DNA of 64,000 bases from Chrysemys picta bellii (lineage: Eukaryota), in contig NC_088800.1 of the NCBI RefSeq assembly GCF_011386835.1, forward strand, positions 79,918,001-79,982,000. Reading direction: 5' to 3'. Position 1 is the stretch's first letter. Each line of letters opens with the position of its first letter. Of the stretch, positions 23,471-57,300 are shown one piece after another. The notes beneath the pieces were generated by a model that was given only the letters and a program-made list of their open reading frames with translations, searched no databases and was not told the DNA's origin. A program made the position numbers and the translations under genes.

Positions 23471-24186
23471 GTGAGCTCCTTTCTTTCCGGGAGAGCGATA
23501 TTCCCCGGGGCGGCGGTGGGTCGCATTGCACTGCCCGACACGCCGCTGGGCGGGGTGAGAGTAGGGCAGGGGGTACTAGGCCACAGGCAGGCTATTGTAA
23601 GAGGTGGCGTGTTCTCCCTTAGAGTCTAGCAACGAGAGACCTGCGCCTGGCCTGCTCCTTATTCCAGCCAGCCCGCTTCGACCGTCCCTTGGGGTGTCTG
23701 GTCTGGGTCTCCTACAGAGATAGTCCCCTAGCTACACGCAGCAACTACGGGTCAATATTACCAGCTTTCAGCCCAGCCCAGGATGTTTAAACTCAGGTTT
23801 TCCTTGACCTGGCTAGGTGGTTTCACAATATCTGTGTATAATGGTTACGGCCATAGTCTGTGGTTAAAAGCAAATGTGAGGGGAGCTAAGACTCGGCGAT
23901 TCCCAGCTTTGTCACTGACTGCCGGGTGATATTTGGCTTCCTGGCCTTTACAATGGCAGTTATGATGCCTACGTATCTCTCAGTAGTTTGTGACGCATAA
24001 TAGGTCTTTGGATTTAAGACATTAGAGAAGGGTAAAGTACTATTAACTGGGAAACCTGCCCTGAAAAGTGAAGGAATATGTTATGAATTAAAACGGAAAT
24101 TAGGAAAGGCTCCCTCCCTCCTATACACTGATAACATGTTAAACACTTATTCATTGTTTAAAAAAAAAAAAAACTTGTCAGACCAT

Positions 24187-24547
24187 TTTTCAGAGTAGCA
24201 GCCGTGTTAGTCTGTATCCGCAAAAAGAACAGGAGTACTTGTGGCACCTTAGAGACTAACAAATTATGTAGATTGTAATGGATTTTTTACCTTTAGTCCT
24301 TTTGGTATGGTGTCCATCTGCTTGCATTTGGAAAGGAAGATGATGTCTGTCTGTATCTGTGTGAGTTTTTTCATGAAGTTGATGGATTTCCACTCCATAC
24401 GGCTAAATGCAGTGCCTTGCATAATGACAGGTTTCAGAGTAGCAGCCGTGTTAGTCTGTATCTGCAAAAAGAACAGGAGTACTTGTGGCACCTTAGAGAC
24501 TAACAAATTTGTTAGTCTCTAAGGTGCCACAAGTACTCCTGTTCTTT
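24187..24547 (-). mobile_element. Penelope-like element insertion (pLTR end, ORF N-terminus, pLTR, fold-back) in BUD31 intron 1
   Basis: 12-bp TSD TTGTCAGACCAT (24175-24186 and 24548-24559). The minus strand encodes MQGTAFSRMEWKSINFMKKLTQIQTDIIFLSKCKQMDTIPKGLK. Perfect 86-bp palindrome at 24465-24550. Confidence 0.88.
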
Positions 24548-24781
24548 TTGTCAGACCATGTCATTTGTTTGTTCCTTAGTTTAATTTATCTCTAAATAAA
24601 AAACCCACCTCTATCTTTATCATTGAAAAAGGGAGTCAAAATAATGCTGAAAAATCTCAAGGGCTTCCTTATGCTTTTTTTTGGAGGGGTGGGGGTGCAT
24701 GATGACCTTATGATATCTGGAAACATAAGTGCTATTGAAACTTGACCTGCATTTATCCCTATAACAGCCTTTTTTGAGAAG

Positions 24782-27494: not shown

Positions 27495-28391
27495 ATCTTA
27501 CCTCCCCCCCAGAGTGGAGTGGAATAATCTTGTGACAAGGCAGTTCAAAGATTGATTACACATATTCACAATGGCATATGGCTCCTGGCAGCAGAGCTGT
27601 ATTGTCAGTAGTAGAGGCACCCGTGAATGGGATGTAATCCTTAACAAGTGACAACTCTATGCCATACCCAGGTAGCTATCCCTGTACAATTATCCCTTTG
27701 TCTTTAATAGTAGTGTCCTACTTACAAAGTGACTCCCTAAAGCAAGATAGTGAGGCAGGTATACAGAAACTCGTGTACAGGTTTTCTGTTACTTCAAATT
27801 TCAGTACTAGTGAAGCTAGCTGGCCTGGCTGGGTGTTGTACCATTGGAAAGTCAAGCTTCCTCATTCCCCCTGGGTTACAGCTTTCTGTTAGGACTGAGT
27901 TCCTGGGGTTTGGAATTGTTGTCTGTTACTAAATCTAGCAAGTCCCAGACTGCCAGCTTTCAAGCCCTGAACACTTCTTGCGGTGGAGGGGAAGGTACCT
28001 TTCAATAAACTGCTTAATATGAATTGCATTGTAAGTTTAGTGGGACAGCATGGAGGTACAAACTGAGTACTTAATTTCATGGATAATCGCACCATTTGGC
28101 AAACACTAAGGAAAGTAACCTAGGGTCAAATGTGTATTGTCTCCTATTTGAGCCAAAAACTAGCCTGAGGTTGTCATTAATGATACAAATGCTTAGCACC
28201 TCTATTCCACGAGCAGCTGTTAGATGGAGAACTTAAAATGCTTAACACTATCATATACTCCATCTCCTCTGCCACATGTGATTACATTGTAGCCCTTCTA
28301 AAAACAGCCAGAAATGCAAATGCTTATTAATTTTCTACAGAAGCATCTAATAAGTGTTTTGACCTTTGAAAAAAAGATAAGCCTCTTACTT

Positions 28392-28522
28392 AAAAAGAAC
28401 AGGAGTACTTATGGCACCTTAGAGACTAACAAATTTATTAGAGCATAAATTTGTTAGTCTCTAAGGTGCCACAAGTACTCCTGTTCTTTTTGAGGATACA
28501 GACTAACACGGCTGCTACCCTG
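28392..28522 (+). mobile_element. Penelope-like element mini-insertion with inverted arms
   Basis: 13-bp TSD AAGCCTCTTACTT (28379-28391 and 28523-28535); two inverted copies of the pLTR end seen at 24187. Confidence 0.88.
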
Positions 28523-28871
28523 AAGCCTCTTACTTGTTACTCGTGTTCTAGGGGTGATGCTAGTTTCCTCTCCTAGGGACCAGCAGACATTGGCTGCCGT
28601 TCAGGTCTAAAGGCCCTCTTCTTCGGTGATGCCTGGACCCAGAGAGGCAGATGGAATCAAAAACTGCCTTATGAACTACCTCTGAAGATGAATTAGAGAA
28701 CCACTGAGTAGTTGTTTCTAACAGCTCTGGCAATTCAAACCTCTTACAAAATCAAACACAAGCTTGCCACTTATTAACAAAGCATCTATTAATAGTAGTG
28801 GGAAGCGACGCTGTGCTGATGACCACCTAGTCCTTTTTAGTTCTTATTTCTCCTTTCTGTTGAGATGGTAC

Positions 28872-29017: not shown

Positions 29018-32000
29018 TTACTGTTCCCTGGTGCCCTGGGGCTGCGTGTCCTCTGCACTGCCCTTGGCTGCTGAATTCTTAGTTCTGTATTTTGCCCATG
29101 GGTGTGGAGTCTCCTCTGCTACCATTGCTTTTAGCCAGCGGAAATAGTAGCCTCGGAACCCATCAATCTTCTCCAGATAGGTGTTCTTTGACTTATACTG
29201 CAAGTGAAAGCCCAACAGTACATGTTATTCTATGGAAGAGTAACTAGGCTGCTCTGATTCTGCAAATTGGAAGAAGACCGAATACTCCTACTAAGCCGCT
29301 ACAGAAAATATTTGGCAGCTGCACTGTACTCTTAACTGTCACCATTTCAGCCAATGCTTAAACAGGTGGTAGATGAGGAAGATACAATTTTATTGGGGCA
29401 GGGAGGAAAGGTAGAGATCTTAAAAATTACTTCACTCTCCTGCTAGGCGTTATATAAACAGACAGTCCTTATCCAAAACAGCTTAGTCTCATCTGTGCTT
29501 TTCCACATTACAATGTTCACTTCAGCCATAATCAGTTACATTGGTCCTGGTCCTAATAAATGACTGTGGTACTTACCCTGTCAAACTGAGGTGGATACTG
29601 AGCTGCAAACTCCAGCTGGCGTATGACAACTTCGTTTGGGGGGACCTGGTTCTTTCTCATGTCTCGTAGGATTTCTGTGAGGTAAGTATAGTCCAACTGC
29701 TTCACAGCTGCATTGATAAGGGTGCTGTAGATGTGGGTGTTGGGAGTAATCCCAGAGTTCTGAAAACACATCAGTGTCCGAATTATTAGTGCCTGCTATC
29801 TACTACAGAGCTGATCTCTGCAGACCTTTCTGCCGGAGAGATATGAGCACATCCTAACGGAGGATTTTGACTAATATTATTTGACCTCAGTGCTGGCAAG
29901 TCACATCACCACTTAAGAGTGCAAGAGCTGAAGCATAAATACTTTTGCCTACCAACACGCACTTTGGGGGACGTGTGTGTCACAACTCCACTGCAGATAA
30001 GGGGGAAGGGCCCATTACCTAGGGAGTGCAGCTGCCTTTCCTGTTATGGTTTTGGTTACCTGTACAGTACTAGTGAAGTTTACAATCCAATCCTCCTTCC
30101 CATGACCCATGCATTAAGCTAGACTACTGTACCACAAAGGAGGAGTTGCAGAAGATCTGACTAGAGGGAGTTCCGTTACTTTAGCCTCAGTGAAAGCTCA
30201 TGTAGAGAAAGGTACAGGATCACTGCCTGTAGGAATCCCCCAGTTACTGCTGTCCCAATAATAAAGTAATAATACTTTCCAGTAGCCAGAGCTGTAGTTT
30301 TTGTACCTTCATGTCCAAAAGTAACTGCAGTCCATCTTTCTCTTTGCGGCAGGCTATGGCCAAGTTACAAAACGTCTGTATGTTGGGTGATATTCCCCTC
30401 TGCACTAGAGCTGTCAGCATGCCCTGCAAAACACAAATACTTGAGTACTTAGACCATTCTAGATGATTTAAGATGCAGCACTGACTGTTTCCAAAAGAAG
30501 TTCCAGCTAGTTCTCTTTAGCCAGAAGGCTGCTATATGAGAATGCAACAGAATCCGCAGAGCTCCAATAAGTACTTTAAGGGTCCCTTATGGGAGAGGGA
30601 GAGAATATACGATTCTGTGCCTTCTGCTGTGAGTGGAGAGTTGATCTCAAAGGTTAAAAGGCAGCTAACGTGACACCAGTATGACGATAAAAGTTTGCAG
30701 TATAGTCATCATTTGGGGGCTCTTATTCTTACCTTTGCACCTTCTAGGTCTCCCTGTTTACTCTTCTTTCTCAACAAAGTATTAAACAAGGTCACATCTA
30801 CTTTCACTTTATGTTCATCCAGGACTGTCAATAAAGAGGATTCTGACTGGCTCAAAGGTTCAACCAGCTCAGCCAACAGTGTGAAAGTCTTAATGTTGGG
30901 TGCCACATTGTCCTCTTTCATTTTATTCAAAAACCCCTCCATGTTCCCCATCAAAGCCAGCCTATCGGAGGGCGTTGCTACTGTCCCTAAGGAAACCAAG
31001 TTCTTATTGGAGATGTTTAAGTCCAACAAATTGGGCAGGTTCCAAGCAGACTCAACAAATTCACCTCGGTTTGTTTGAGGTGGATCTGAAATAGCCTGGT
31101 TTCTTCTGAAGTGTCCAATCGTACTGCATTCTACTGTCTTATTAGTGAGACCAGTCAATCCAGTTCCTGGCTCAGTCTGAACCTCACTCACGTCTTTGTC
31201 TTCATTGTTGATTAAGTGTTCCTCAGTTCCTCTGGAATCTTCTTGAAATATTTGTTTTTCCATGGTTTCCACATCTAACTGGGTAGCAACTCCACTGTCT
31301 GCTCCCTTCCTTTTCTGACTTTTCACCTTTTGACCCCGCCTACCCGATATGAGCTTTACTTGAGCAGGGTTTTCATCTGTGCTTCTTAGCAACAAGTCAG
31401 AAGCCACAACTGGGTCACCTATTCCACAATCCCTTGCAGCATGGAGCATCAAATTGTAAATGTAACCATCAGGTTTAATTCCCAATTTAGTCATTTGTCG
31501 CCAAACCTGTTTTGAAAGGGAAAAAATGTAGAGATGCTTAGATAGAGTTAATGTATGTGAAAAGTGTACAGCATTAAAGAAGTGGGGTATTTTTAGCTAG
31601 AAGTAATCTGTCATATTTAGACCCAATTATTGTAACATTTTAGGTGCCCACCATCAGGCTTTCTAGCTGCACAAATGGGAATGATACACTTCTTCAACAG
31701 AAAAGACCTCCACACCCCAGACCGGACACCCATCCAAACTATTATTAGTACAATCCTCTAGTGCACATGGCACTTTATGGGCATCAGATAAGAAACCTGA
31801 CTGAGGAGCTTACAGTTTAAGCATTTTCCACCTCCATCAGCTCCAAAGGCCCCTCCCGCAGGTTCCAATCCCAAATTACAGATACAACAGTTACATGAAT
31901 GGCAAAACAGGATAGAACTAGACCTGCAAGGCATATCTGAGGCCACTCTCCTTGTCCTTTATGCAGCCCATGAGAAGGAAGCTGAAGGTCTCTGTGGTGA

Positions 32001-41100: not shown

Positions 41101-43037
41101 TACCAGTTACCTAGTCTGTGGGTTGGCAATGACTGTCAGATGGCTCCTCAGTGGCCTGTATGAAATGGTTCAATGCACTTGATCCACTTGCTAATCACAG
41201 AAAACCCCACTAGTGGCAGTTAAAAGGACATTGTCAACCCGAAATTGAGCCAATTTCAAAAACCGTCTTAGAAGTAGTTTCAGCTGCTACCCCTGCCCCT
41301 GAATGTTCCTCCTTGCATTTTCCTATTTTTAAAAAGGCTTCTCCCCTGTTACTGTGTGAAAAACTCACCCAAACAGGGGAAAGTGACTATACACAGTCAA
41401 ATCCAGAAAGGCTGAAGATGGTTCTGCCACAGCACGCGTAGTTCCTGCCAAACCGAGGAACAAGACATCATACCCAAATTTCTCAGTTTGTGGTGCAGGC
41501 AGCTCCTCAATTAAACTGAAACCTCAATTTCCATTAACATTTTGCAGAAACATCCCCACATGCTACTGTAGATAGCAAAGGATCTTCTTAGCCACTCTCT
41601 TCAGTAAGTCGGACCAAGATGAGCACTAGCATTAATAATGAACCTAAACGTTTCTTTATTCAAAACTAAGTCTCTTAATAATCTAAACATACAACTAAGA
41701 CTGTTTTTTGGACTCATTCCACCATTATCTTCTATAACTAGACATTTATTCTGGCTACATGATTATAAACATCCAAATCCGTTTAACTGAGAACCTCTAA
41801 GGCTCCAATTTAATGCAAGATTTGGGTTTCAGTGAAGGCAAAGGGCCTAAACCTACCCACTAAAGTTATCCTTGTGAGTCTTGCCCTTAACTTCCTTTGT
41901 AGCAGAAACTCTAATTGGGGCTAGTTGTATGTCATGGGGGGGCGGGGGGGAGAAATGGGCAGGGGAGAAGTCATATGCTTCCAATGCTCTTCTATGACTA
42001 ATCTATGCAACGCTGTTGCCTTTGTCAAAGGTAAAGCAGGAAAGCAGCACAAAAGAGGATATAGGGGCAGCAGCAGTTCTCTTCCCCCTCCCTTCCTCCC
42101 CGTTCTCTCTCTCACCACAGAGCTTCCCCACCAGGCACTGAGATCGTATGTTTAACGGGTTCTAACATTTTAGTCAGTTTTTTATTGGAAAATAAAAGAT
42201 ATTTTGATTTCAATTAGTTACCCCATGACTCTTGTCATGCATTTGTTTGGTTTTATTATCAATGCGTTACTTTCCATTTTTCTGCAGCTGAAGCTTTGAA
42301 AAGTCACTACCCTACCCAAGGCTAAGCAGTTTCTCTGCATAGTCATCAATAAAAGAGTGCTATCAGGCTGGGATTTAAGGAAGTAATTCAAATAAATTGC
42401 ACATCTGGAGAAAGTAGGAGGGTCAGACTACGATATGTCATGGCTTCACAGCTTAGAAGGCTGTTTCAGAGCATAGGAAGCATCTTTTGTTCAGATTGAG
42501 TTTTACCCTTTTAGTCCAGGGTGGCTGACAAGGAGACTCTCATCTGAACGTTTATGTTCATCATACACATTGGTCAGAGCAGAGTCCTTGAGACTTCAGG
42601 TGCTGAAATATAGCAGGTAAAAAGCCCCTTTCTCTACAGCGGAGTAATGCAGTTAAATCTCCTCAGGGCTTTGAGTATCTCTATTGCAGCCCTTTCCCAT
42701 TGGTAGTGCCAAGAACCCCAGTGTTCAGATGGAACCTGGGTCTTCAGGTTATAGTGGCAGGCAAGTTCTGGTCCTAACAGTCAAGTGGCCCCAAAAGGGT
42801 CTGTGGCAAGGATCTCATTTATGGTATAGCACAGAATGCATTAACTTGCTGAATATTGTCTCTCGTGTACAAATGGCATTGCTTCCAAACTAGAACTACT
42901 TGCCAGTTGGTTTGTTAAAGGCAGTGTTGGGAAAAGCCACAATAACTCCTCCCTTTTTTCCTTCCTAGTGTGGTGAAAAAGGACATTACGCCAACAGATG
43001 CACCAAAGGACATCTGGCCTTTCTAAGCGGACAGTGA
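35163..43037 (+). CDS. CPSF4: Cleavage and polyadenylation specificity factor subunit 4 (CPSF30), 269 aa, 8 exons
   Basis: join(35163-35265,36635-36685,37568-37720,38526-38621,38755-38848,39687-39759,40641-40811,42969-43037) = 810 nt. Starts MQELIASVDHIKFDLEIAVEQQLG; five CCCH fingers and a C-terminal CCHC knuckle (CYKCGEKGHYANRC). Intron 2 is GC-AG. Confidence 0.98.
35295..35790. repeat. GC-rich minisatellite (alternating about 41-45-bp units) in CPSF4 intron 1
   Basis: Alternating GGAGACCCCCCCATGGTCCCGGGGGGGACACCCCTCTCCTG and GGAGACCTCCCCCTCACAGCCCCCGGGGGGAGCCCTCCTCCCCTGC units. Confidence 0.9.
37006..37306. mobile_element. PIF/Harbinger MITE (family of 15276-15551) in CPSF4 intron 2
   Basis: Termini GGGTACGTCTTCACTAC / GTGTAGACCAGCCC; internal similarity to the 15276 copy; TSD CTA/ATA imperfect. 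Confidence 0.85.
41060..41200 (+). mobile_element. LF-SINE-like fragment in CPSF4 intron 7
   Basis: GACTGTCAGATGGCTCCTCAGTGGCCTGTATGAAATG resembles the LF-SINE body from memory. Confidence 0.4.
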
Positions 43038-43584
43038 GACAGCATAGAGGGAGGAGAGTGCAAGGAGGTTCTTTACACTGGGGAAAAGTTTCCGCCTAGC
43101 ACTATTTCTTGAACTATTGATCAGGTGTTTTGGTTTTTTTTTAAACGCCATTAGTGAAAGAACTGTGGCCAGAGGCTGGCTGCTGATAAACATTTTTGTA
43201 ACTGTCCAATTTTTTATGTTTTAACCTTTTAAAATAGATCTTGGCCTCTGCCTTCTTTCACTGAGCCTAGCTGGGAGGTAGATCTAAAGGCAAATAGATG
43301 TGCAAATCCCCACCAACGCAACATTCAGCGTAATACACATCTTGCTCCAGTGTGTTTCTGTAAAGGATAGCCTTTGGGAACCTCCAACCTTTCAGCAATC
43401 CTTGTTCAAGGAGGAAGACAGACTGGAAGAACTAGTACTTGAAATGCCTCCCACTTCAGTGAGGGAGCTTGTCATGCAGCTCTTGAAAGGAGGCCCCATG
43501 TTCCCTTATTCAATCGGAGGTTTCTTAACCTGATGGCTCACATAACATGTGGTGTACCAAGATGTAAAGTATTTGTCCAACTGC

Positions 43585-43590
43585 AATAAA
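43585..43590 (+). terminator. Candidate AATAAA polyadenylation signal of CPSF4 (a second one at 43886-43891)
   Basis: AATAAA followed by GU-rich sequence about 550 nt after the stop. Confidence 0.55.
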
Positions 43591-45274
43591 AGTTTGTATG
43601 CTTTGGCCGGAAGCATTTTCCCCTTTGCTGTTCTGCGGGGTGAGAAGTTGGTCCTTGTATGTGAAAACCACTTGTAGGGGAATGAACGTACATTTATGGT
43701 TTTAGCTGAAATCACAAAAGCATTGGCTGTAGAAGAGGCGCAGGTCTGTTCTCACCATGGCAACCCTGAACTCAGACCTGAAGTAGCTTTGAAGGTGTAA
43801 CACTATATGGATACCAACAGATGAAGTTAGTTGGCATTCCCACAAGCAGTCAATTGCACAAGTATCTTCACAGGCTCTCGAAACAAATAAATGGAACTAT
43901 ATATTCTTGAGATTGCTTTTAAATTGGACTCTGAGTGTTAGAGTATCCTCATAGGAGCATGTTTTTCCAAGCCAAAACACCTTAATTTTGTAAGACTTTG
44001 GTCCTTTGAAATAATGACAAAGAGAATTTAAAAAAAAAAAACCCATCTGTTGCATCTGGAATATGTGAGCCTTTTCTAGTCTCGAGCATCTATCTACATT
44101 TGCTTATCTGCCGTTGTTTTTTCCTTCCTATTTTAAAGTTTTCTGTGAAACTTAGGTTGTGATTTTTCAGGAAAAGGGTAATGTATGCCTAGGAAGCGAT
44201 AGGACCCTGGGTTGGTTTAAATGATTACACAGGACTGTTGATTTTAAAAAAATTGTAGAAGAAGCTGTACTTACTGATACTCCTTTTAGTAAGTACACAG
44301 TGGGATATTTAGGCTTAAAAGTTAAAATTAAATCCACAGGTGTAAGTTGGCTGACTAGCATTGCTCATTCTGCATTTTTCAGAACACGCATCAAGACTTC
44401 TGTCCCTGAAGTCTATAAACAAGTGCCAAACCTGTGTTTGTGCTTCCAGCACAGGGCTGTTAAAGACTGTGCATCTCTAAGCAACTACCCCCATCTACAC
44501 TTAGTGAACTAAAGCTTATCTGCTTGAGAGTATGGTCAGCTGGTGGAAGTTTTTTCAAGCCAGACAGTAATTTCATCTTTATAATACTGCTGAACACAGA
44601 AGTGCTCCCTGCCATCCTCCAGCAAGACCTTTATTCTAACCAGGTTCTTAATAGGCAGGGGCCTCTGTACCCCATTAACAGCTGTTATCAAACACTCTTA
44701 TCACTGTTAGCTTTAGACAAACAGCCTCTTGTAATTCATCCATAAAGAACTGGCCCCTGCATCCTTCTGAACAGTAGCATCATTACTTACTGATGTGTTT
44801 TGTTAATGTAGGTGGTCCCGAGTATATCGAAGCTGTGCTTCTTTAAGTGACAACCATGTACTCTCCCCCTTGCTTATTTAGACTTTCACCATCATGGTTG
44901 GAAGTGTCAGCTGACAAACATGGCTTTGCTGCTGTAGAAGTTTCATTTCATCCCTCTCCACTTTATTTAAAAAAATAAAACCCAATAGCTTTAGCATAGT
45001 TGCTTGTCCCTGGCATTTAGAATAATCTGTCACATTCCATTTTAAATATAGGCTACTCATTTGCTTTCATTCTGCCTTTACCATCACTTGGGCAAGGGTT
45101 GTTCTACACACAAATCTATGGACACCTTTTAGGACCAGTGGCAGGAGCTGCTTGGCAACATACTATTGAAGACAACCACTATCCGAGATCTTACTTAGTA
45201 AAACAGTACAGATTAAAAGTGGTGGAAGTGGCCGCTAGCAGAGAAATTTTGTTTTGTATGAGGCAACTATTATT

Positions 45275-45502
45275 ATAGATTCATAGATTCTAGGACTAGA
45301 AGGGACCTCAAGAGGTCAGCGAGTCCAATCCCCTGCCCGCATGGCAGGACCAAATACGGTCTAGACCATCCCTGATAGACATTTATCTAACCTACTCTTA
45401 AATATCTCCAGAGATGGAGATTCCACAACCTCCCTAGGCAATTTATTCCAGTGTTTAACCACCCTGACAGTTAGGAACTTTTTCCTAAATGTCCAACCTA
45501 AA
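45275..45502 (-). mobile_element. CR1 3' end (young subfamily)
   Basis: (ATAGATTC)n tail plus 3' UTR; near reverse complement of 55729-55920. Confidence 0.88.
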
Positions 45503-45787
45503 ATATACAACTTGGAATGGATTTGAGGCACATTGTGCCATAAGCAGATTCTTTTGAAAATAAGTGGCTAAACAAAGTTTAAAAAGCACAGTAATAGGAG
45601 AAAATGTTTTTCTGGTACAGGACTAGTAGTACAAAAAAAATAGTGTACAAGTACCTCGATAACACACCCGTTTTGCAATAATGCAACTTTTAAGTTTCAT
45701 ATTCAGAGGGGTAGCCGTGTTAGTCTGAATCTGTAAAAAGCAACAGAGGGTCCTGTGGCACCTTTGAGACTAACAGAAGTACTGGGA

Positions 45788-45828
45788 GCATAAGCTTTCG
45801 TGGGTAAGAACCTCACTTCTTCAGATGC
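45788..45828 (-). ncRNA. Minimal type I hammerhead ribozyme motif (identical inverted copy)
   Basis: Exact reverse complement of 46914-46954. Confidence 0.7.
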
Positions 45829-46029
45829 AAGTAATGGAAATCTCCAGAGGCAGGTATATATCAGTGTGGAGATAACGAGGTTAGTTCAATCAGGGAGGGT
45901 GAGGTGCTCTGCTAGCAGTTTAGGTGTGAACACCAAGGGAGGAGAAACTGTTTCTGTAGTTGGATAGCCATTCACAGTCTTTGTTTAATCCTGATCTGAT
46001 GGTGTCAAATTTGCAAATGAACTGGAGCT

Positions 46030-46712
46030 GGCCCATCCGACCTGAGGCTGTGGTTGGTGGACAGAAAGCCAGAGAACCCGCGACACGCCGGGCAGCTGGC
46101 TGATGAGTTTGTAAAGAGCCGGTCAGGGGGTGGCAGGGAGGAGCCCCAAAGGAACAGGCCCGCCGTGATGCAGAGAGAGAGTCACCCTGGGACCTCCCAA
46201 AGAGGGAATATGGGGAATCCCCTCCCACGGGGAATGCCCAGCGTCAGGGACAACCGACCGGCTCGAGGGGACCCACAGGACATGAGCTGCTATTACTGCG
46301 GCCGAAGAGGCCACGTTCGGGCCCAGTGCCCCAAGCTCAAGGACAGACTGAGCAGACCGAACCCGCATAGGGTTAACTTGGTAGAGGCCCAGACGGACGA
46401 GGGGCAGGCTTCTCACGCAAGAGGGGCTGGCAGCTTATCAACTGCTCAAGAGAGAGAAGGGCCCCAGGCCAGCTCCTCTAGGGGGCTGGATGCCCCAGAC
46501 TCAGGGTTTTTGGTTTATACGGTGGGCGCGGGGCTGTCCCTCCGGAGAGAGTACCTTGTTCCCCTGGAGGTGGATGGGAGGAAGGTCAATGGATACTGGG
46601 ATACGGGCGCAGAGGTGACGCTGGCCCAGCCCGAGGTGGTGGCCCCAGATCAGGTGGTGCCCAACTCCTACCTGACCCTGACGGGGGTGGGCGGAACACC
46701 AGTCAAAGTCTG
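46030..46712 (+). mobile_element. Gypsy/Ty3 LTR-retrotransposon internal fragment: gag C-terminus, CCHC zinc knuckle, aspartic protease N-half
   Basis: Stop-free frame with GPSDLRLWLVDRKPENPRHAGQLADEF, CYYCGRRGHVRAQC and VDGRKVNGYWDTGAEVTL (DTG active site); no LTR ends. Confidence 0.92.
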
Positions 46713-46913
46713 AGCTCCAGTTCATTTGCAAATTTGACACCATCAGATCAGGATTAAACAAAGACTGTGAATGGCTATCCAACTACAGAAACAGTTTCTC
46801 CTCCCTTGGTGTTCACACCTAAACTGCTAGCAGAGCACCTCACCCTCCCTGATTGAACTAACCTCGTTATCTCCACACTGATATATACCTGCCTCTGGAG
46901 ATTTCCATTACTT

Positions 46914-46954
46914 GCATCTGAAGAAGTGAGGTTCTTACCCACGAAAGCTTATGC
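46914..46954 (+). ncRNA. Minimal type I hammerhead ribozyme motif (Penelope pLTR)
   Basis: Stem I GCAT/ATGC, core CTGAAGA plus an extra A, stem II GTG(A)GGT-TCTT-ACCCAC, GAAA, palindromic stem III AGCT; predicted cleavage CUU|A between 46950 and 46951. Confidence 0.7.
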
Positions 46955-47780
46955 TCCCAGTACTTCTGTTAGTCTCAAAGGTGCCACAGGACCCTCTGTT
47001 AAGTTTCATATTGTTAACTATCAATAGTCCACGCAGAGTTAAGGCTCCACATTTCAACAACATGCTAAGTTTCCTAAAGAAAGCTACTTTAACAGGCATA
47101 ACCAAGATGTTCCCTCATTTGATCAACTCCAACTAACTTGATGTGCAGAAGGGCTTAAATATCCAGAGTAAGCCACATGCAACATTTGTTACTTTGATCA
47201 ATTTTCCAAAAAATTATCAGAACATTGACAATAAGATAAAGGGAGAAAAACATGGAGGAATGGAATTCTAATGACTATACATGCATATTCTTTTGACAGT
47301 AAGGGAAAACCCTTTTACAGATAAGTTACAAAGAGAGAAGGCAAATAAACAATTTTGTACAAGAAAATTATTATGAGTTTTAGATATCTGTGGCTACTAT
47401 GAAGTGTCTGTTGGCATCTTAAACAATTGAATTCTCCTTTGCAACAGTAAGAATCCTGTTAAAACAAGTTCTGACCAGTAATGTCTGCACCAATTTGGTT
47501 GAAGTGAAGGGATCATTAAAGTAGAGGTACCCTATACAGTGGTAATACTTCTCAGTAAAATAGTTAAAGATTAATCAGTCTTATCCTTAGTCATTTGCAC
47601 TGCACATTAGACCAATTTATTATTAAATGGCGAAAGGCTTTCTAACCATCTTCATTGTACCTACCATATAGAGGGGAAAAAAGGCAAGAAGACGCACACA
47701 ATTTTCAGCACCAGAAAGTGAAAGTCTCACAATAATAAGAATATTAGCTACATAAACCAACCAACCTTAAATGTACATAT

Positions 47781-47786
47781 TTTATT
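47781..47786 (-). terminator. AATAAA polyadenylation signal of ATP5MF
   Basis: TTTATT on the + strand about 140 nt downstream of the stop. Confidence 0.65.
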
Positions 47787-47924
47787 GGTCATAGAATCTG
47801 CCTGGAATTATAACAGTACAGAATTCAGTGTGACTGGCTTATATGCCTTCATCGGGAAAAGTTGTTCCAGCAGCTGAATCCAGGTCCAGGGCTGCAACTT
47901 GCATTGCTGCAGTAAGTTAATGTT

Positions 47925-50900
47925 TCAATGATACTTCCTCCAACGCTCATGCTCTGCATCATTTAAATTAAAACAAGTCAGTTTGCTGAAGTCATAAAGA
48001 CCATTTTTAGTACTTAGGTATTTAAAGTACAGTCTAAGATTGCACTACACAGTAGGCAGTTCTTGACTACTGTTGGACAATAAAAGCAGCGAGATAATCT
48101 TTGTTCACCACTAGCACAAGTACTATTTTGTAAATTATTTAATTCCTAAATATTACCAAACGGCTAATTCATCTTCACAACTTCCGACAGGCAAGTATTA
48201 TACCCATTTTCTACATAGGTTAAAATTATTAAGTGACGGTCACAAAACTGCAGAGGCAGGGTTAGAATTTAGCTCCCTACTCCTAGTCCCATGCTCAATC
48301 TGTTAGTATGTGTCTTGTCAGCATTTCTCCGATATATAAATAAGAAAGTTAAGCACTCTCTCTCACTTTGCTTCCTCTTCCAGGAACAGTTTTTGAAATC
48401 ACCCCCCCACCCCCATAGTTCTACAGACTACACTAGTGTGCCCAACCATACAAAGTAAGGTTTTACTTACTCAAATGGTGATAGTTCCAAATGTAGCTGA
48501 CAACAACATAACCAAAAAGCACCATAGAGATACCACCGATGCCGCCTTTCTTCACACTGATGTACTTATTTAAGTATCTGACATAACCTAAATAGGGGAG
48601 AGAGTTATTTTCTTAGGTTCAGTGTCAATTATACCCTGTATACAGTTATACTTACAACTCAAAAGTCATTTTGTACAGCTACTTACTGTACCCCTTTCAA
48701 CAGAAATTCAGATGAGAAAAAACACTAGAAAATCTCTAGAAAATAGCATCTATGATCTCCAAACATACTAATGCAGTGGTTCTCAACCTATTTATCATTG
48801 TGGGCCGCATCCAATATTACCTGTATGGCTCTGAGGATGTCACATGGGCCATAGCTGTGCACTGACTGGGCTACAGGTTGAGAACCACTGTACTAATGAA
48901 ACAAGTCTACCAGAAGACAACTCATGTTAAGAAAAATAGGATAGTATTAGCTTTAGACTCATGTATGGAACGGAATAAGAGTGACTCAGTATCTTGTTTC
49001 AAGCCAGATACTACTGAGACTTTCATGAGAGCAAAGTTGTTTCTCCAGTTATTCAATTTTTAAAAGAACTATATGCTCTGTCTACCGAACTACGACTAGT
49101 CAAGAATACTTGAGCTCATTGGAAGCTTCATGTGTTTAAAGATATCTGAAGATGCATATGGCACCTACATAAACCATGAAGTTACAACAGAAGTACAGTA
49201 TTTAGAAATTGCTTAGTCCTTAGGGTTTTTGCAAAATTGTTACTGAATTTTATTAGACTTTGTATTATGTTAATCTCTACCAAAAACCTTGTTTCTTTCC
49301 AAACCATTGCCACCTAAAATTATACATTTTATTTGCCTCTTGTGATATGAAAAAAAGTACTGATTGTTTATTTTAAGCACATCAATTCAGGTCCCACACA
49401 CTCATTTTAAGGAATAAGCAGGCCATTTTACTGACGTAAAACTTCTAAAAGATTTATTTATCTATATGTAAACTGAAAGCATATTAAACCTCTGAACAGG
49501 CTGACAAAGCAACCCTAATGAATTCAAACACATTCATAAGAACAGAACAATATACTATAAAAGGCAACATTTCTGTGCCTGTTTTAGGAACATAAGAATT
49601 GCCATATTGAATTACATCAGTGGGCCATCTAGTCTGGTATTCTGTCATCAATGGCCAGTACCAGCTGCTTCAGAAGCAGCACCAGGCAATTATGGGATAA
49701 CCCGTCCCCAAGGAAAACTTTCTGCCTAGCCCCTGCAATAATTAGAGGTTGGCTTATGCGCCAAAGTTTCTTCCTCACAGGAAGGATGGTGACAGTATAT
49801 TTAAATATGTGCATAGTGCTGGTCAGCCTCAGTAGGGGAGATGCTTCCACTTCCTTAATGAGGGGCAGCATTCCCCACCGAGGATAGGTCTACGCTTGCG
49901 GTGGCATGCAGGGTACAGAAGCTGCACACCCAGCTAGCACCGGTATAAACAACAACATAGACAATGAGGCACAGCGTTGGCAAGTAGGGTCGAGTACCCT
50001 ACATGCCTGAACTCTAGGGTATATGCCCTACGTGGCGCTCTACAAGTCCAAGCAGTGCCGCTGCCACAGTGAAACTCCAGCAGCAGGCAAAGGCAGGAGC
50101 TGCCAGAGCCTTTCCTCACTGCCTCCCCCTCGCTAGAACTCTTCGTTGCCATGCGTATCTACACACTGCAGCGAGTGTGGATGCAGGCTGTTTTTCACCG
50201 TGATGGGTAGACAAGGTCGAAGTTTGAGAGGAGTGGGGGATGGGTGGGGCAGATTTAAATTTTATTAGAGAATATTTAAAAAGTAAACAATACAGAAAAT
50301 TTGAAGCGTCAGTTATTGGTCATTGGGGGCAACATACAGAGTATAGGGGTATGTTGGTGTTTTGGGGTTGGGCAGCACACATAGTATATACAGACTGCAA
50401 TGTCCCCAATGAGGGGTGGGTAACCGGTGGGCGGGATCAGGAAACAGTCGATAAGCGGTGAGGGTCTATCACCCATACGGGAAGTAGAGACAGTCATGGG
50501 TATAAGTAAGCGGGCTGGGTAATGGGGATGGGGTGACCCTCACGTGGTGGGATTCAGCTAGGTTTGGTGGGTTCAGGGCTCAGGGGATAGAGTCCAGCAG
50601 GGGGTGTGTGTGGGTGCACTACCACTTAGTTCTCCCCAGTGAAGCCAGACATGGCCATTTAGGCCCAGATCCTGCAGTCGGCTCTGAGCAGGATCTGAGA
50701 ACGTGTGCAAGGTTAGGATATGTGGACAGGATCTAGAGGGCAGGGCAGCTCCACATCTGTCCTCGCCGTCACTAGCACTTGGCCTTACCCTTTACCAAGG
50801 CTACCCCTGCCGGCTCATGGGGCAGACTCACCTCTTCGCACAGCCCCAGTCAGCCCGGAGGGGGTGAAATCCCGCATTGCAATCCAGCTGGGCAGCTGGC

Positions 50901-51374
50901 CCAGCTTCACGTCCAGGAGCCTGGTGTCTTTGAGAGGAACTGAGACACAGAGAAAGCCCGTCACTGCCCGTTTGTCGGGGAATAGCTGCAGCACAGGGAC
51001 ACGGACAGCTCCCCCCACCCCCCGGGGGGGACAGGCACGGAGAGAATCACATTGGAGGGGAGCGTATCCGAGAGGTGAGCAAGGCTCTCCGGGGGGATGG
51101 GCAGTGAAGCGGGGGCAGGGATCCTGGGGGTGTGGGGATGGGCATAGAGGGCGCGGGGGCAGGGGAGGGCCAGGCACTGGAGGGAGGGAATCCTGGGGGC
51201 ATGGGGTGGGCAGGACCGCGCCCGGGGCGTCCCTTTTGGGGGGAAGGGGTCACGCTGCGGAGGCCGGGCTAGGGCCAGAGGCGCCCCGCAGGCCCTGGAC
51301 CAGGGGCTGGGCGGGAACCAGTCTCCGGTCACCTTGGAGCCCCCGGGGCCGCACTCACCGAGCCGGTCCGCCAT
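47925..51374 (-). CDS. ATP5MF: ATP synthase membrane subunit f (ATP5J2), 89 aa, 4 exons
   Basis: complement join(51359-51374,50832-50939,48471-48587,47925-47953) = 270 nt. Reads MADRLVPLKDTRLLDVKLGQLPSWIAMRDFTPSG...KYISVKKGGIGG...KHERWRKYH*. Confidence 0.97.
48774..48890. mobile_element. Short hAT (Charlie-like) MITE in ATP5MF intron 2
   Basis: TIR CAGTGGTTCTCAACC / GGTTGAGAACCACTG; perfect 8-bp TSD TACTAATG (48766-48773 and 48891-48898). Confidence 0.92.
49589..49790 (-). mobile_element. CR1 3' fragment
   Basis: AACATAAGAATTGCCATA tail and a CR1 3' UTR-like body; ends approximate. Confidence 0.7.
49881..50218. mobile_element. Old Harbinger-like MITE
   Basis: Degenerate GGTCTAC... and ...GTAGACAAGG termini. 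Confidence 0.35.
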
Positions 51375-51560
51375 CTTGCAACTGCGCGGGGTGTCGGTGC
51401 GCAAGAGAGGAAGACGGGCAGAACGTGGCGCTGAGACTCACGGGAGGAAGGGCTCAGAAGCCGGAAGTGAGGCAGCCGTTGCCGGCGTGGGCGGGGCGCC
51501 ATGATAGGGAGGGCGGGGTTGGCTGGCTCCGAGCCACGTGCGAGCAGGCCCTCCCCCGCG
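51368..51560 (-). promoter_or_regulatory. ATP5MF CpG-island promoter
   Basis: YY1-type CCGCCATCTT overlapping the start codon (51368-51377), GABP/ETS CCGGAAGTG (51461-51469), GC box and CACGTG E-box. This motif set is typical of nuclear OXPHOS genes. Confidence 0.7.
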
Positions 51561-51699
51561 TGTCACGTGCAAGGCGACACCCCCTCGTGTGAACAGACCA
51601 CCCACGTGTCACGTTCAAGGCGACACCCCCTCGTGTGAACAGACCACCCGCGTGTCATGTGCAAGAGACACCCCTGTGAACAGACCCGGGCGTGTCACC
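51559..51699. repeat. 46-bp tandem repeat (about 3.2 copies) just upstream of ATP5MF
   Basis: Units start at 51559, 51605, 51651 and 51691: CGTGTCACGTGCAAGGCGACACCCCCTCGTGTGAACAGACCACCC. Confidence 0.9.
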
Positions 51700-54316: not shown

Positions 54317-57300
54317 CTATTTCCTCATTTCCATAAATATTAACAGAGCATCCAGATTTGTTTCATGTTTAATTTTCTTTGCCCATGAGTCACTATTGGG
54401 GTCCCTGGGCATGTGTGGGCTGGGCAGCAAGGAGATCTCTTTATGCAGAAGGGAGGGAGGGATTCTGAAAAACTAGATATGATTAAATGAATGATCATTT
54501 TAACAAGTAGAAAACCCCAGCAGGTGTCAGCCTTGCTTAGCAGAACTGTTCATCTAGAAATAATCTCTACATTAGCCCGACCTCTAGAGGTTTTAAAACG
54601 ACATAATTCAAACTCATGAACTAAGCGTTGGGTTTTCTATGAAAGCAAAATGATACGGCAGGAAACAGAGACTAGCCGTCCACCGGTGCCTCTGGAGCGC
54701 CAGAGAAGTCCCAAGTTTTGCTCCCACTTATTCTGATAATACTATTCTACAGTTTAATAGACTTTATCCTCAGGGGTTCTACATGTTCGGCTCATATTTT
54801 GCCTTAATCAGTTTCTTAACTTAGAAGCATGCTCTCTCCCTTAAATAAGAAAACGGATGGAATAGATTAATGCCAGTTATTTTCTTTTACTTATTAGTAG
54901 GAATCAGTATTAGTAAAATGTAATGTGCTCATTCAGTTAAAGGAATTATTCCTCCCCAATTCTCTGTTAAATGAGTTAAAAATCCTTCGATTAAATTAAG
55001 TTTTATTTTATTATTGCACTTACCGGTAATGTTTTTTTATTGCAAAAGTGGCCCCTGACGAACTCTCATATGGCCTTTTTCTTGTATTGCTAGACTCTAT
55101 AGGCTCCGTCCTGCTTCCCTTCCTGAGGCATGTAGTCCTGTTGTCTGAAATGGGACTATTCATGTGAGCAAGGATCATTTGCAGGGGGGAAATCTGTAGG
55201 GTCAGGTCCCTGTTCTCAAGCAGTTCCTTTCCTGTGGAAAAGTGCCTGGCACTGTGCAAAGAAGATAATGTCAGGCTGGTGGAAATTAGGGGTGGAATTT
55301 AAATCAGCTTTTCTTTTTTTAAGTCTCCAATACAGGTTCACTTAGACAGCAGTGATCTAACCCCTGATAAGAACTGTCCACCTTCTTTTAGACTAGAGTA
55401 AGAGTAGAGATAGTCGCTGATTAGGCCCAGAGCCTTAAATTAGGTTCCTAACTTCCATGGAAATCAATCAGAGGTAGGTGCCTAAATAAGTTTTGAGGAG
55501 CTGAGTTTTAGTCTTTATACAACCTCAACCCTGAGCGGAGCACAATATTTAACTGATGTAAGTATGTGCAGTGGATCTGTGACACATAATAGCCTACTGA
55601 AGTGCTACCCCGAGGCTTTCACTCATTTCTCCGGGGACCTCCTAAATGGTGGGAAGTTACTTCACAAGTAATCGCATGGAAACACCAGGGATTTCATCTT
55701 TCAAATATACAGAGTGTTTTGTAAAAGAATTCAGTGAATGCTATGGACATTGCCTAGGGAGGTTGTGGAATCTCCATCTCTGGAGATATTTAAGAGTAGG
55801 TTAGATAAATGTCTATCAGGGATGGTCTAGACAGTATTTGGTCCTGCCATGCAGGCAGGGGACTGGACTCAATGACCTCTCGAGGTCCCTTCCAGTCCTA
55901 GAATCTATGAATCTATGAATTTTTCTTTTTATGTAGCATCCTTGATTCACAGTATTACAGTATGCTTCATTGGGAAAGCCAATTGTAAGCTAAAGAGTAA
56001 TGACAGAGGCGGATTATGGTTTTGTGGAACCCTGGGCCAGAGCAAGTGGGGGCCCCTCCCGACCCCTTCCGCCTGCAGTCCGCTCCTGCTGGGGAAATGA
56101 GGTCGGGGCGCGGGGGCTTGCCCCGCCCGGTGCTCCTGCCAGGGAGCGGGAGAAGCCCCGCAGGAGCGCCGGGTGGGCGGAGCAGATCGGGGCATGTCAG
56201 AGACCATTTTTCCAGGGCCCCTGAATTGGCAGGGGCCCCTGGGCATGGGCCTCATTGGCCCAGGGGCTAATCTGCCACTGAGTAAAGAAAGGTTTTATAG
56301 CCAGACGAATAAGAAGTAGTTTAAAATTAATGTTTGTACAGTGCCTAGCACAAAGGAGTCCTGGTCCTATGTGCTATGGTAATACAAATAATAATAATAA
56401 TCTTCTTGTGCCTTGTAAAATATTTTGAGATTCTTGGATGATGAGCGCTACAGAATATTATTACTGTATTACTGATGTAGCAGAATGTTTGCATAAATCA
56501 AACCAATCCAAACTGTAAAGGGTCCACATACTTAGCTTTTATCATACAGTAATGATACTTTGCATTCCTCTAGCTCCTTCCCTCTGAGGTCCTCAAAGCA
56601 CTTTACAAACATTAATGAATTAAGGTAGGTAAGGGATATATGAGGACCCCTCCATCCACTGCTATAATGCAGCAGTTTAGCAACACATAGCAGCACTGCT
56701 TAACAATAAGGACAGGAAGTAAAGAAGACTACCACAGCTAACTGAAACTGCAGAGAGAATTCAAGCAGGCAGATTGCAATTATCTGTATTGGAATTTGGT
56801 CAGGACACAAGGATTAATTTCCTACGCTAACAAAAAGTACTATGGGATCTTCAATGGCCATGGTGATCAGACACTCAGTTTTAATCATATCCAGAAGACT
56901 GTCCCCTCACCTAACACCTTAATGGACAATTGGTTTACCAATGACTACAGGGGAGGGTACCGCTTAACGAATTGCTACCACAACTCCCTAGAACAGGAAG
57001 ATGTTACCTGCAGGTCTCCTAGCCAAGTAGTGATGCAACCCAATCCTACTTATCTTTTGAGATCTCGAGGCAACCACAGCAGATGATAGCTTGGCTGCAG
57101 GCATAGTGGTAAGGTTGGTGCACACAGGGCATGCAAAATATCAGCAGCCAGCACAACCTGCACTTCGCTATCATTAATGTTTCCTTAGAGTTGCTGCCCT
57201 GGCAAGCCCTCATATCCTGGGGCCTCTTCCTCTTCTCTCTTTTGGTCTGAGGCTCTTTGCCAGTTGGGGTTTTCCCTAAGATGAAAAGGAAGAAGAGGAA

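Follow-up and report, generated by a model that had tools for sequence, protein, structure and literature searches.

Two inverted Penelope end-pieces around a captured Gypsy fragment in Chrysemys picta bellii

Penelope-like elements (PLEs) of the endonuclease-containing (EN+) type are typically accompanied by an inverted, 5'-truncated copy in head-to-head arrangement, often carry a tail of 30-40 bp at one end only, and are flanked by a target-site duplication of variable length (Craig et al. 2021, PMC8557442). The purified PLE protein of Anolis cleaves and extends both strands of its target, uses two internal reverse transcription start sites that delimit the tail, and prefers ATT targets (Frangieh et al. 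2024, PMC11167929). For the PLEs of the rotifer Adineta vaga, captured sequence of unrelated origin, enclosed by terminal repeats and a single duplication, has been described, as have template jumps (Arkhipova et al. 2013, PMC3846280). An insertion related to these lies in a 64,000-nucleotide stretch of Chrysemys picta bellii DNA (assembly GCF_011386835.1, NC_088800.1, positions 79,918,001 to 79,982,000, forward strand), which is referred to here as the window and supplies the position numbers. It consists of two inverted Penelope-like end-pieces around 679 bp copied from a recently active Ty3/Gypsy element.

The turtle unit shares with canonical complex PLE insertions (PMC8557442, PMC11167929) the inverted, 5'-truncated 3' ends, a one-sided tail of 38 nt, a 14-bp duplication of an AT-rich target whose end reads ATT, and a palindromic motif where the copies invert. 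It differs from them in having 679 nt of an unrelated retroelement between the copies, and in arms that are short (326 and 289 nt) and contain no reverse transcriptase (RT). The A. vaga case is similar in that foreign sequence is bounded by PLE termini and one duplication, and in that template jumps or self-priming were proposed, with palindromes at the inverted junctions; in contrast, the turtle host is a vertebrate and the cargo is an internal coding fragment of a long terminal repeat (LTR) retrotransposon. Furthermore, the NRPS gene captured in A. vaga is located between two direct repeats with a third repeat inverted, whereas the turtle copies are inverted and head to head (PMC3846280). 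Twin priming by LINE-1, and the chimeras of LINE-1 with U6 or other RNAs (10.1101/2025.02.02.635956; PMC4476161), offer a further parallel, as both target strands prime, the RT switches between RNAs and the resulting chimeras are dead on arrival. However, the inverted LINE-1 segment comes from elsewhere in the RNA, further upstream, whereas the turtle arms are the same 3' segment, apparently begun at two PLE start sites, and the enzyme would be a GIY-YIG/telomerase-like PLE protein. The composite was dead on arrival and exemplifies behaviour already known for Penelope; it does not represent a new type of mobile element, and no function is evident at its site.

Architecture of the composite and its empty site

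The unit contains two arms of 288 nt each, which a first-pass annotation of the window had read as exact reverse complements; a repeat search and a script found them 100% complementary, with 683 nt (46030-46712) between them (Table 1). The arithmetic of that annotation, in which removal of the insert and one copy of AGCT leaves a palindrome of 572 bp (288+288-4), is correct. The middle was described there as stop-free gag, CCHC and protease sequence without an LTR, and this holds: it has 227 codons without a stop in frame 1, a CCHC match in Pfam and a DTGA motif read by eye. By our own arithmetic, the chance of 227 stop-free codons at 63% GC is ~0.002. The arms have a GC content of 45% and the flanks one of 37-39%, against 63% for the middle.

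Within the window, the 14-bp sequence TTAAGTTTCATATT is confined to the two ends of the unit, its right-hand copy sharing 2 nt (TT) with the right arm. In Trachemys scripta elegans (L005; loci fetched from other turtle sequence carry L numbers), alignment of the flanks extends to 45703 on the left and resumes at 46996, and the site holds a single 14-mer with GTTAAC immediately after it. The precise empty site with a single 14-mer implies that the entire 1,295-bp unit was inserted in the Chrysemys lineage and that the 14-mer is a true target-site duplication. The Penelope/Gypsy unit is therefore a single insertion relative to Trachemys and specific to the Chrysemys lineage, in agreement with the first-pass reading of one duplication bracketing the whole. 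Orthologous turtle loci were reached via ATP5MF exon orthologues, and Trachemys is the sole examined comparison: Emys and Mauremys do not have the older insertion that received the unit and are thus uninformative on this site.

The Chrysemys and Trachemys flanks show 1.44% substitution divergence (98.6% identical), and at this rate the zero differences over the 288-bp arms bound the age of the event only to less than ~0.7 of the time since the two lineages split. The earlier argument that identical arms imply a very recent event, or ongoing conversion between the arms, was accordingly overstated, and no conversion is needed.

The two Penelope copies are inverted, 5'-truncated and head to head within one target-site duplication, and the + strand target end at this AT-rich site reads ...CATATT. 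The left copy has 38 extra outer nucleotides that the right copy does not have, an extension that fits the published 30-40 bp Penelope tail. At the inner end, the junction bases place the right copy 3 nt further inward than the left.

The assignment of the arms to Penelope, made in the first-pass annotation, is borne out by their 3'-terminal, head-to-head arrangement and by a C-terminal peptide match. On its sense strand the right arm contains 36 codons and a stop, and the encoded peptide matches the C-terminus of an open reading frame (ORF) in a Mauremys Penelope copy (16/25, E=3e-11). That ORF (L004:7650-8024) has a GIY-YIG match (E=0.004), and an RVT_1 match (E=4e-5) is located upstream on the same strand; both are below the Pfam cut-off. 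By way of this relative, the arms appear to be the 3'-terminal pieces of an EN+ Penelope-like element, one whose ORF combines an RT with a C-terminal GIY-YIG endonuclease.

The terminal 72 nt have three further occurrences in the window, at ~82% identity. A hammerhead-like core (CTGAAGA...GAAA) is found at 46918-46950 and mirrored at 45811-45824, and the same motif is present in a same-subfamily copy of 98 nt (L007:21154-21251); Rfam gave no hammerhead match at E<=1 over 45500-47200, the only match being a sub-threshold miRNA. The inner AGCT of each arm, which the first-pass annotation had noted on both sides of the insert, is indeed present, and it is native Penelope sequence, part of the 6-bp palindrome GAGCTC (46712-46717), the single GAGCTC in 45601-47100. 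The off-centre opening of a hairpin proposed there as its origin is unneeded. A same-subfamily Penelope reference that crosses the GAGCTC point was not found in ~165 kb of fetched turtle DNA, where L007 supplies the 98-nt terminal copy only.

Table 1. Parts of the composite, the insertion that received it and related Gypsy copies. Identities are DNA identities over 46031-46709, gap-free except in L001.
Feature	Position	Strand	Remarks
Older host insertion that received the Penelope/Gypsy unit	45277-47366	no strand	~770 bp minus unit; 8-bp duplication ATTATTAT at 45269-45276 and 47367-47374
Target-site duplication, left copy, TTAAGTTTCATATT	45690-45703	no strand	single copy at Trachemys empty site
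Penelope tail, outermost 3' end, left copy only	45704-45741	-	38 nt; homologous ends at 24190, 24434, 28513
Left arm, putative Penelope 3' region (last 36 EN ORF codons and 3' untranslated region), antisense on +	45742-46029	-	ends ...GGAGCT; 100% reverse complement of 46713-47000
Single G, origin in neither element, possibly a non-templated addition	46030	no strand	Gypsy has T, Penelope continuation C
Gmr1-like Ty3/Gypsy internal fragment: SCAN-like gag end, CCHC knuckle, protease start	46031-46709	+ (sense)	679 nt, open frame
CTG, Penelope bases just upstream of right arm	46710-46712	+	matches related Penelope copy L004
Right arm, same Penelope 3' region, sense, without 38-nt tail	46713-46998	+	final TT within duplication
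Target-site duplication, right copy	46999-47012	no strand	as left copy
Gypsy copy, C. picta, another chromosome	L007:11016-11694		678/679 (99.85%)
Gypsy copy, C. picta	L009		676/679 (99.56%)
Gypsy copy, C. picta	L001		97.8%
Gypsy copy, C. picta	L008		93.5%
Gypsy copy, Lepidochelys	L002		84%

The captured Gypsy fragment and its junctions

Homology to Gypsy is limited to 679 nt across four independent Gypsy copies, so that the first-pass description of all 683 bp as Gypsy stands for this part only: position 46030 belongs to neither element and 46710-46712 to Penelope. The closest copies reside in C. picta itself, and at the protein level the identity to P0198 is 99.6%. The CCHC knuckle is supported by Pfam (E=7e-5), the DTGA protease motif was read by eye only, and the SCAN domain of P0001 and P0002 aligns at its end with the first ~30 residues. 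A profile-free search of 1.8 billion representatives returned turtle proteins with SCAN, CCHC and integrase domains, followed by RT/RNase H. In homologue P0030 the integrase (601-790) precedes RVT_1 (1083-1215), in P0024 the integrase (724-896) precedes RNase H (1145-1248), and the L008 product, P0199, has the full domain set. An integrase located upstream of the RT corresponds to the Gmr1-like order.

The fragment thus resembles Gmr1-like (Gmr30-type) Ty3/Gypsy elements in the SCAN, CCHC, integrase, RT and RNase H succession of its homologues, and its nearest copies are 99.6-99.9% identical; it differs from such an element in having no LTR, no primer-binding site and no pol sequence past the start of the protease. 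The unit in the window contains no LTR, and in the L007 copy the corresponding sequence is located ~1.5 kb inward of the 5' LTR. The Gypsy part is a captured fragment, not an element. A 4-bp duplication made by a Gypsy integrase was considered as the source of the repeated AGCT and rejected, since the insert lacks TG...CA ends as well as an LTR.

The L007 Gypsy copy is internally deleted, and its 300-bp terminal repeats are 100% identical, which implies that the Gypsy family moved recently. L001 is frameshifted, and the captured piece keeps its frame. As a separate observation, the L007 copy (L007:9190-13075) carries a 902-aa ORF with SCAN and integrase zinc domains and is located inside a C. 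picta Ras/ArfGAP/ankyrin gene. In L009 (10001-22044), the NCBI model for a C. picta 'cyclin-dependent kinase 12-like isoform X3' includes Gypsy gag that is 98.6% identical to the captured piece, and is probably a gene model contaminated by a transposon.

Both junctions can be placed to the base. At the left junction, antisense Penelope sequence (...GGAGCT) runs to 46029, and is followed by G at 46030 and Gypsy sequence from 46031; at 46030 the Gypsy copies L001, L002 and L007 have T, and a continuation of Penelope would have C. At the right junction, Gypsy sequence (...AAAGT) ends at 46709, after which L001, L002 and L007 continue with GCC and the window with CTG followed by AGCTCC. At the corresponding position (L004:7941-7947), the related Penelope copy has aCTGAAC, and the BLAST alignment to it begins exactly at 46710. 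Because CTG matches Penelope and not Gypsy, the right Penelope copy begins at 46710, 3 nt inward of the point where the left copy ends. The exact central position first proposed for the Gypsy fragment consequently does not hold strictly, given that the Penelope copies end 3 nt apart.

Routes to the composite

With moderate confidence, the composite is attributed to a single integration event, during which reverse transcription would have started from both strands of the target and the right-hand cDNA switched template to sense Gypsy RNA. In such an event, the PLE endonuclease would cut both strands of the AT-rich site, 14 bp apart. The + strand end (...CATATT-3') would prime at the outermost start site of the PLE RNA to give the left copy with its 38-nt tail, and the - strand end would prime at the internal start site to give the right copy without one. 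After 289 nt, on reaching the GAGCTC palindrome, the right-hand cDNA would leave the PLE template, jump to the sense RNA of a recently active Gmr1-like Gypsy element, copy 679 nt and add one extra nucleotide. The Gypsy-extended cDNA would then be connected with the left-hand cDNA at its 3' end (...GGAGCT), either by joining or by continued synthesis on it, and fill-in would produce the 14-bp duplication around the arm-Gypsy-arm unit.

Several features argue for this order of events. The left copy holds bases that are missing from the right copy and so cannot derive from it. The outer ends coincide with the two types of start site already described, so that the simplest account has each arm primed by its own strand of the target. 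A jump onto sense Gypsy RNA would leave antisense Gypsy sequence directly attached to the right Penelope cDNA on the - strand, which is the arrangement observed, and the CTG suggests that the right copy continued on the PLE template past the centre of the palindrome. End-to-end jumps without homology and non-templated additions are known for non-LTR RTs. That the Penelope RT switched templates to Gypsy RNA was part of one of the two routes offered by the first-pass annotation, and is the explanation that fits best; the mobile family bounded by inverted repeats (IRs) that was attached to it is unsupported, no second copy having been found, with the genome itself not searched.

Several points weigh against a single event of this kind. 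The assignment of CTG relies on a Penelope copy of another subfamily, 75% identical, and microhomology with Gypsy is absent from both junctions. The PLE copies stop only 3 nt apart, which is unlikely for independent cDNAs unless the point was fixed; a broken RNA end, or transient pairing of the cDNAs at GAGCTC, might have fixed it, at the cost of an added assumption. Finally, for the 60 nt across the left junction (46000-46059), two sampled words listed no sequencing run, a weak negative given that short unitigs between repeats are likely to be dropped. Words from the repeats themselves had shares of 0.6-0.8 in seven organisms, very small runs included, which mainly shows that both families are multi-copy and common among emydids and is not evidence on this locus.

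Long palindromes are unstable, and centre-break repair, together with capture of retroelement cDNA at breaks, is established in mouse and yeast. A second route, possible if doubtful, takes two steps: a plain PLE fold-back, with the arms meeting as GGAGCT / CTGAGCTCC, would have extruded as a hairpin or cruciform and been broken at its tip, where end-joining inserted a Gypsy piece (cDNA or RNA-templated DNA) and one additional G. It accounts equally well for the position of the filler, which is exactly at the meeting point of the arms with the arm sequence intact, as a centre break predicts, and retroelement filler at the symmetry point of a long inverted repeat is the feature it would share with such repair. 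In plain fold-backs of the window it is normal for the arms to stop within 3 nt of one another, and the Gypsy family was active at the time. However, two rare events would be needed at the same site within a short time, the filler would have taken by luck, with a chance of 1 in 2, the orientation that an RT jump predicts, and no bare-palindrome intermediate is known, the empty Trachemys site being the only comparison examined. The junction bases discriminate further. In the strict form, close to the other first-pass route, a perfect AGCT-centred palindrome is opened off-centre and AGCT is duplicated; cleavage of a perfect palindrome would give TGG, whereas CTG is observed, a 1/64 coincidence under that form and a better fit to direct copying of the PLE template. 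That route is weakened accordingly, and its variant, a break at an already slightly asymmetric junction, remains the live rival.

A third route, in which the right junction was inherited, is improbable. Here a PLE would earlier have inserted into a Gypsy copy in the same orientation, and a read-through RNA would have been retrotransposed in trans, with the left arm made by second-strand priming; in its extended form, the product is a mobile chimeric family. The + strand does read sense Gypsy directly followed by sense PLE, as in a read-through transcript, vertebrate non-autonomous PLE derivatives exist, and in rotifers the terminal sequences of PLEs are enough for foreign inserts to be mobilised in trans (PMC3846280). 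Against this, no such junction is present in ~165 kb of other turtle DNA including four Gypsy copies, a weak negative as the genome itself was not searched. A search with the 227-aa piece in a collection of 5.8 billion proteins gave four matches, none ending like the ORF of the chimera within the searchable length range, again a weak negative, as is the left-junction word search. The right copy also has no tail, and promoter evidence is lacking.

That an assembler created the Gypsy sequence between identical arms is very improbable: perfect inverted repeats are error-prone in short-read assemblies (PMC8557442), but positions 43000-50000 of the window are 100% identical to GCA_011386835.2, chromosome CM062327.1 (SLU_Cpb5.0), a hifiasm assembly of PacBio HiFi reads of ~14 kb at ~20x (PMC13077969), in which a 1.3-kb structure lies well inside single reads and is spanned many times over, and the tail/no-tail ends, the duplication and the exact Trachemys empty site are biological signatures.

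Other Penelope insertions and genomic setting

Of the three places where the terminal 72 nt recur, two are small head-to-head Penelope insertions with duplications of their own. A composite of another subfamily, at 24187-24549 (region 24177-24559), is flanked by the duplication GTCAGACCAT and consists of a 75-nt tail-bearing end, a 173-bp filler and then a second tail-bearing end at the exact element terminus. The filler has no match elsewhere in the window or the fetched loci. The filler and the new start at the exact Penelope 3' end point to serial jumps in the window too. The same composite contains a perfect palindrome with 43-nt arms centred on AAATTT (24507/24508), which suggests that transient pairing of two cDNAs occurs. 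A small head-to-head fold-back at 28392-28522 (region 28379-28535), with the duplication AAGCCTCTTACTT, has a tail on the right copy only and an asymmetric centre with a loop of 6-8 nt. Both insertions have a full end on one side and an end shorter by ~30-40 nt on the other, the same tail/no-tail asymmetry as in the Penelope/Gypsy unit.

The older insertion that received the unit is present in Trachemys (L005, 96%), and Emys and Mauremys show an empty site; its first 166 bp recur at 55749-55914 (96%). The site is located between the 3' ends of two convergent genes, CPSF4 (+), which ends near 43037, and ATP5MF (51374-47925, -; exon at 50830-50950, -), so that the composite lies 2.7 kb beyond the 3' end of CPSF4 and 0.9 kb beyond that of ATP5MF. 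A large PPR-repeat exon, PTCD1-like by eye, is located at 30709-31494 (-), with CPSF4 between it and ATP5MF. A 290-aa ORF at 50720-51592 was discarded as a spurious GC-rich frame over the CpG island of ATP5MF.

The transposition cycle of PLEs is poorly understood, and this locus is a tidy natural example that is consistent with the both-strand, two-start-site picture obtained in vitro in 2024 and with template jumping in vivo. Its strengths are base-exact junctions, a clean empty site in the sister genus and a near-identical donor family. It is unlikely, but conceivable, that the locus represents a datable in vivo footprint of a vertebrate Penelope RT that primes both target strands at two start sites and jumps end to end onto the RNA of another retroelement. 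Such jumps would give PLE ends a way to enclose Gypsy coding sequence in an IR-bounded unit, which PLE proteins might then move again. Foreign capture between Penelope terminal repeats was already known from rotifers; the turtle locus adds an example in a vertebrate host, with a piece of an LTR retrotransposon as its cargo. The value of the locus is as a clean natural footprint of the Penelope integration mechanism rather than as a new system, and it indicates that one class of retroelement can scatter coding fragments of another.

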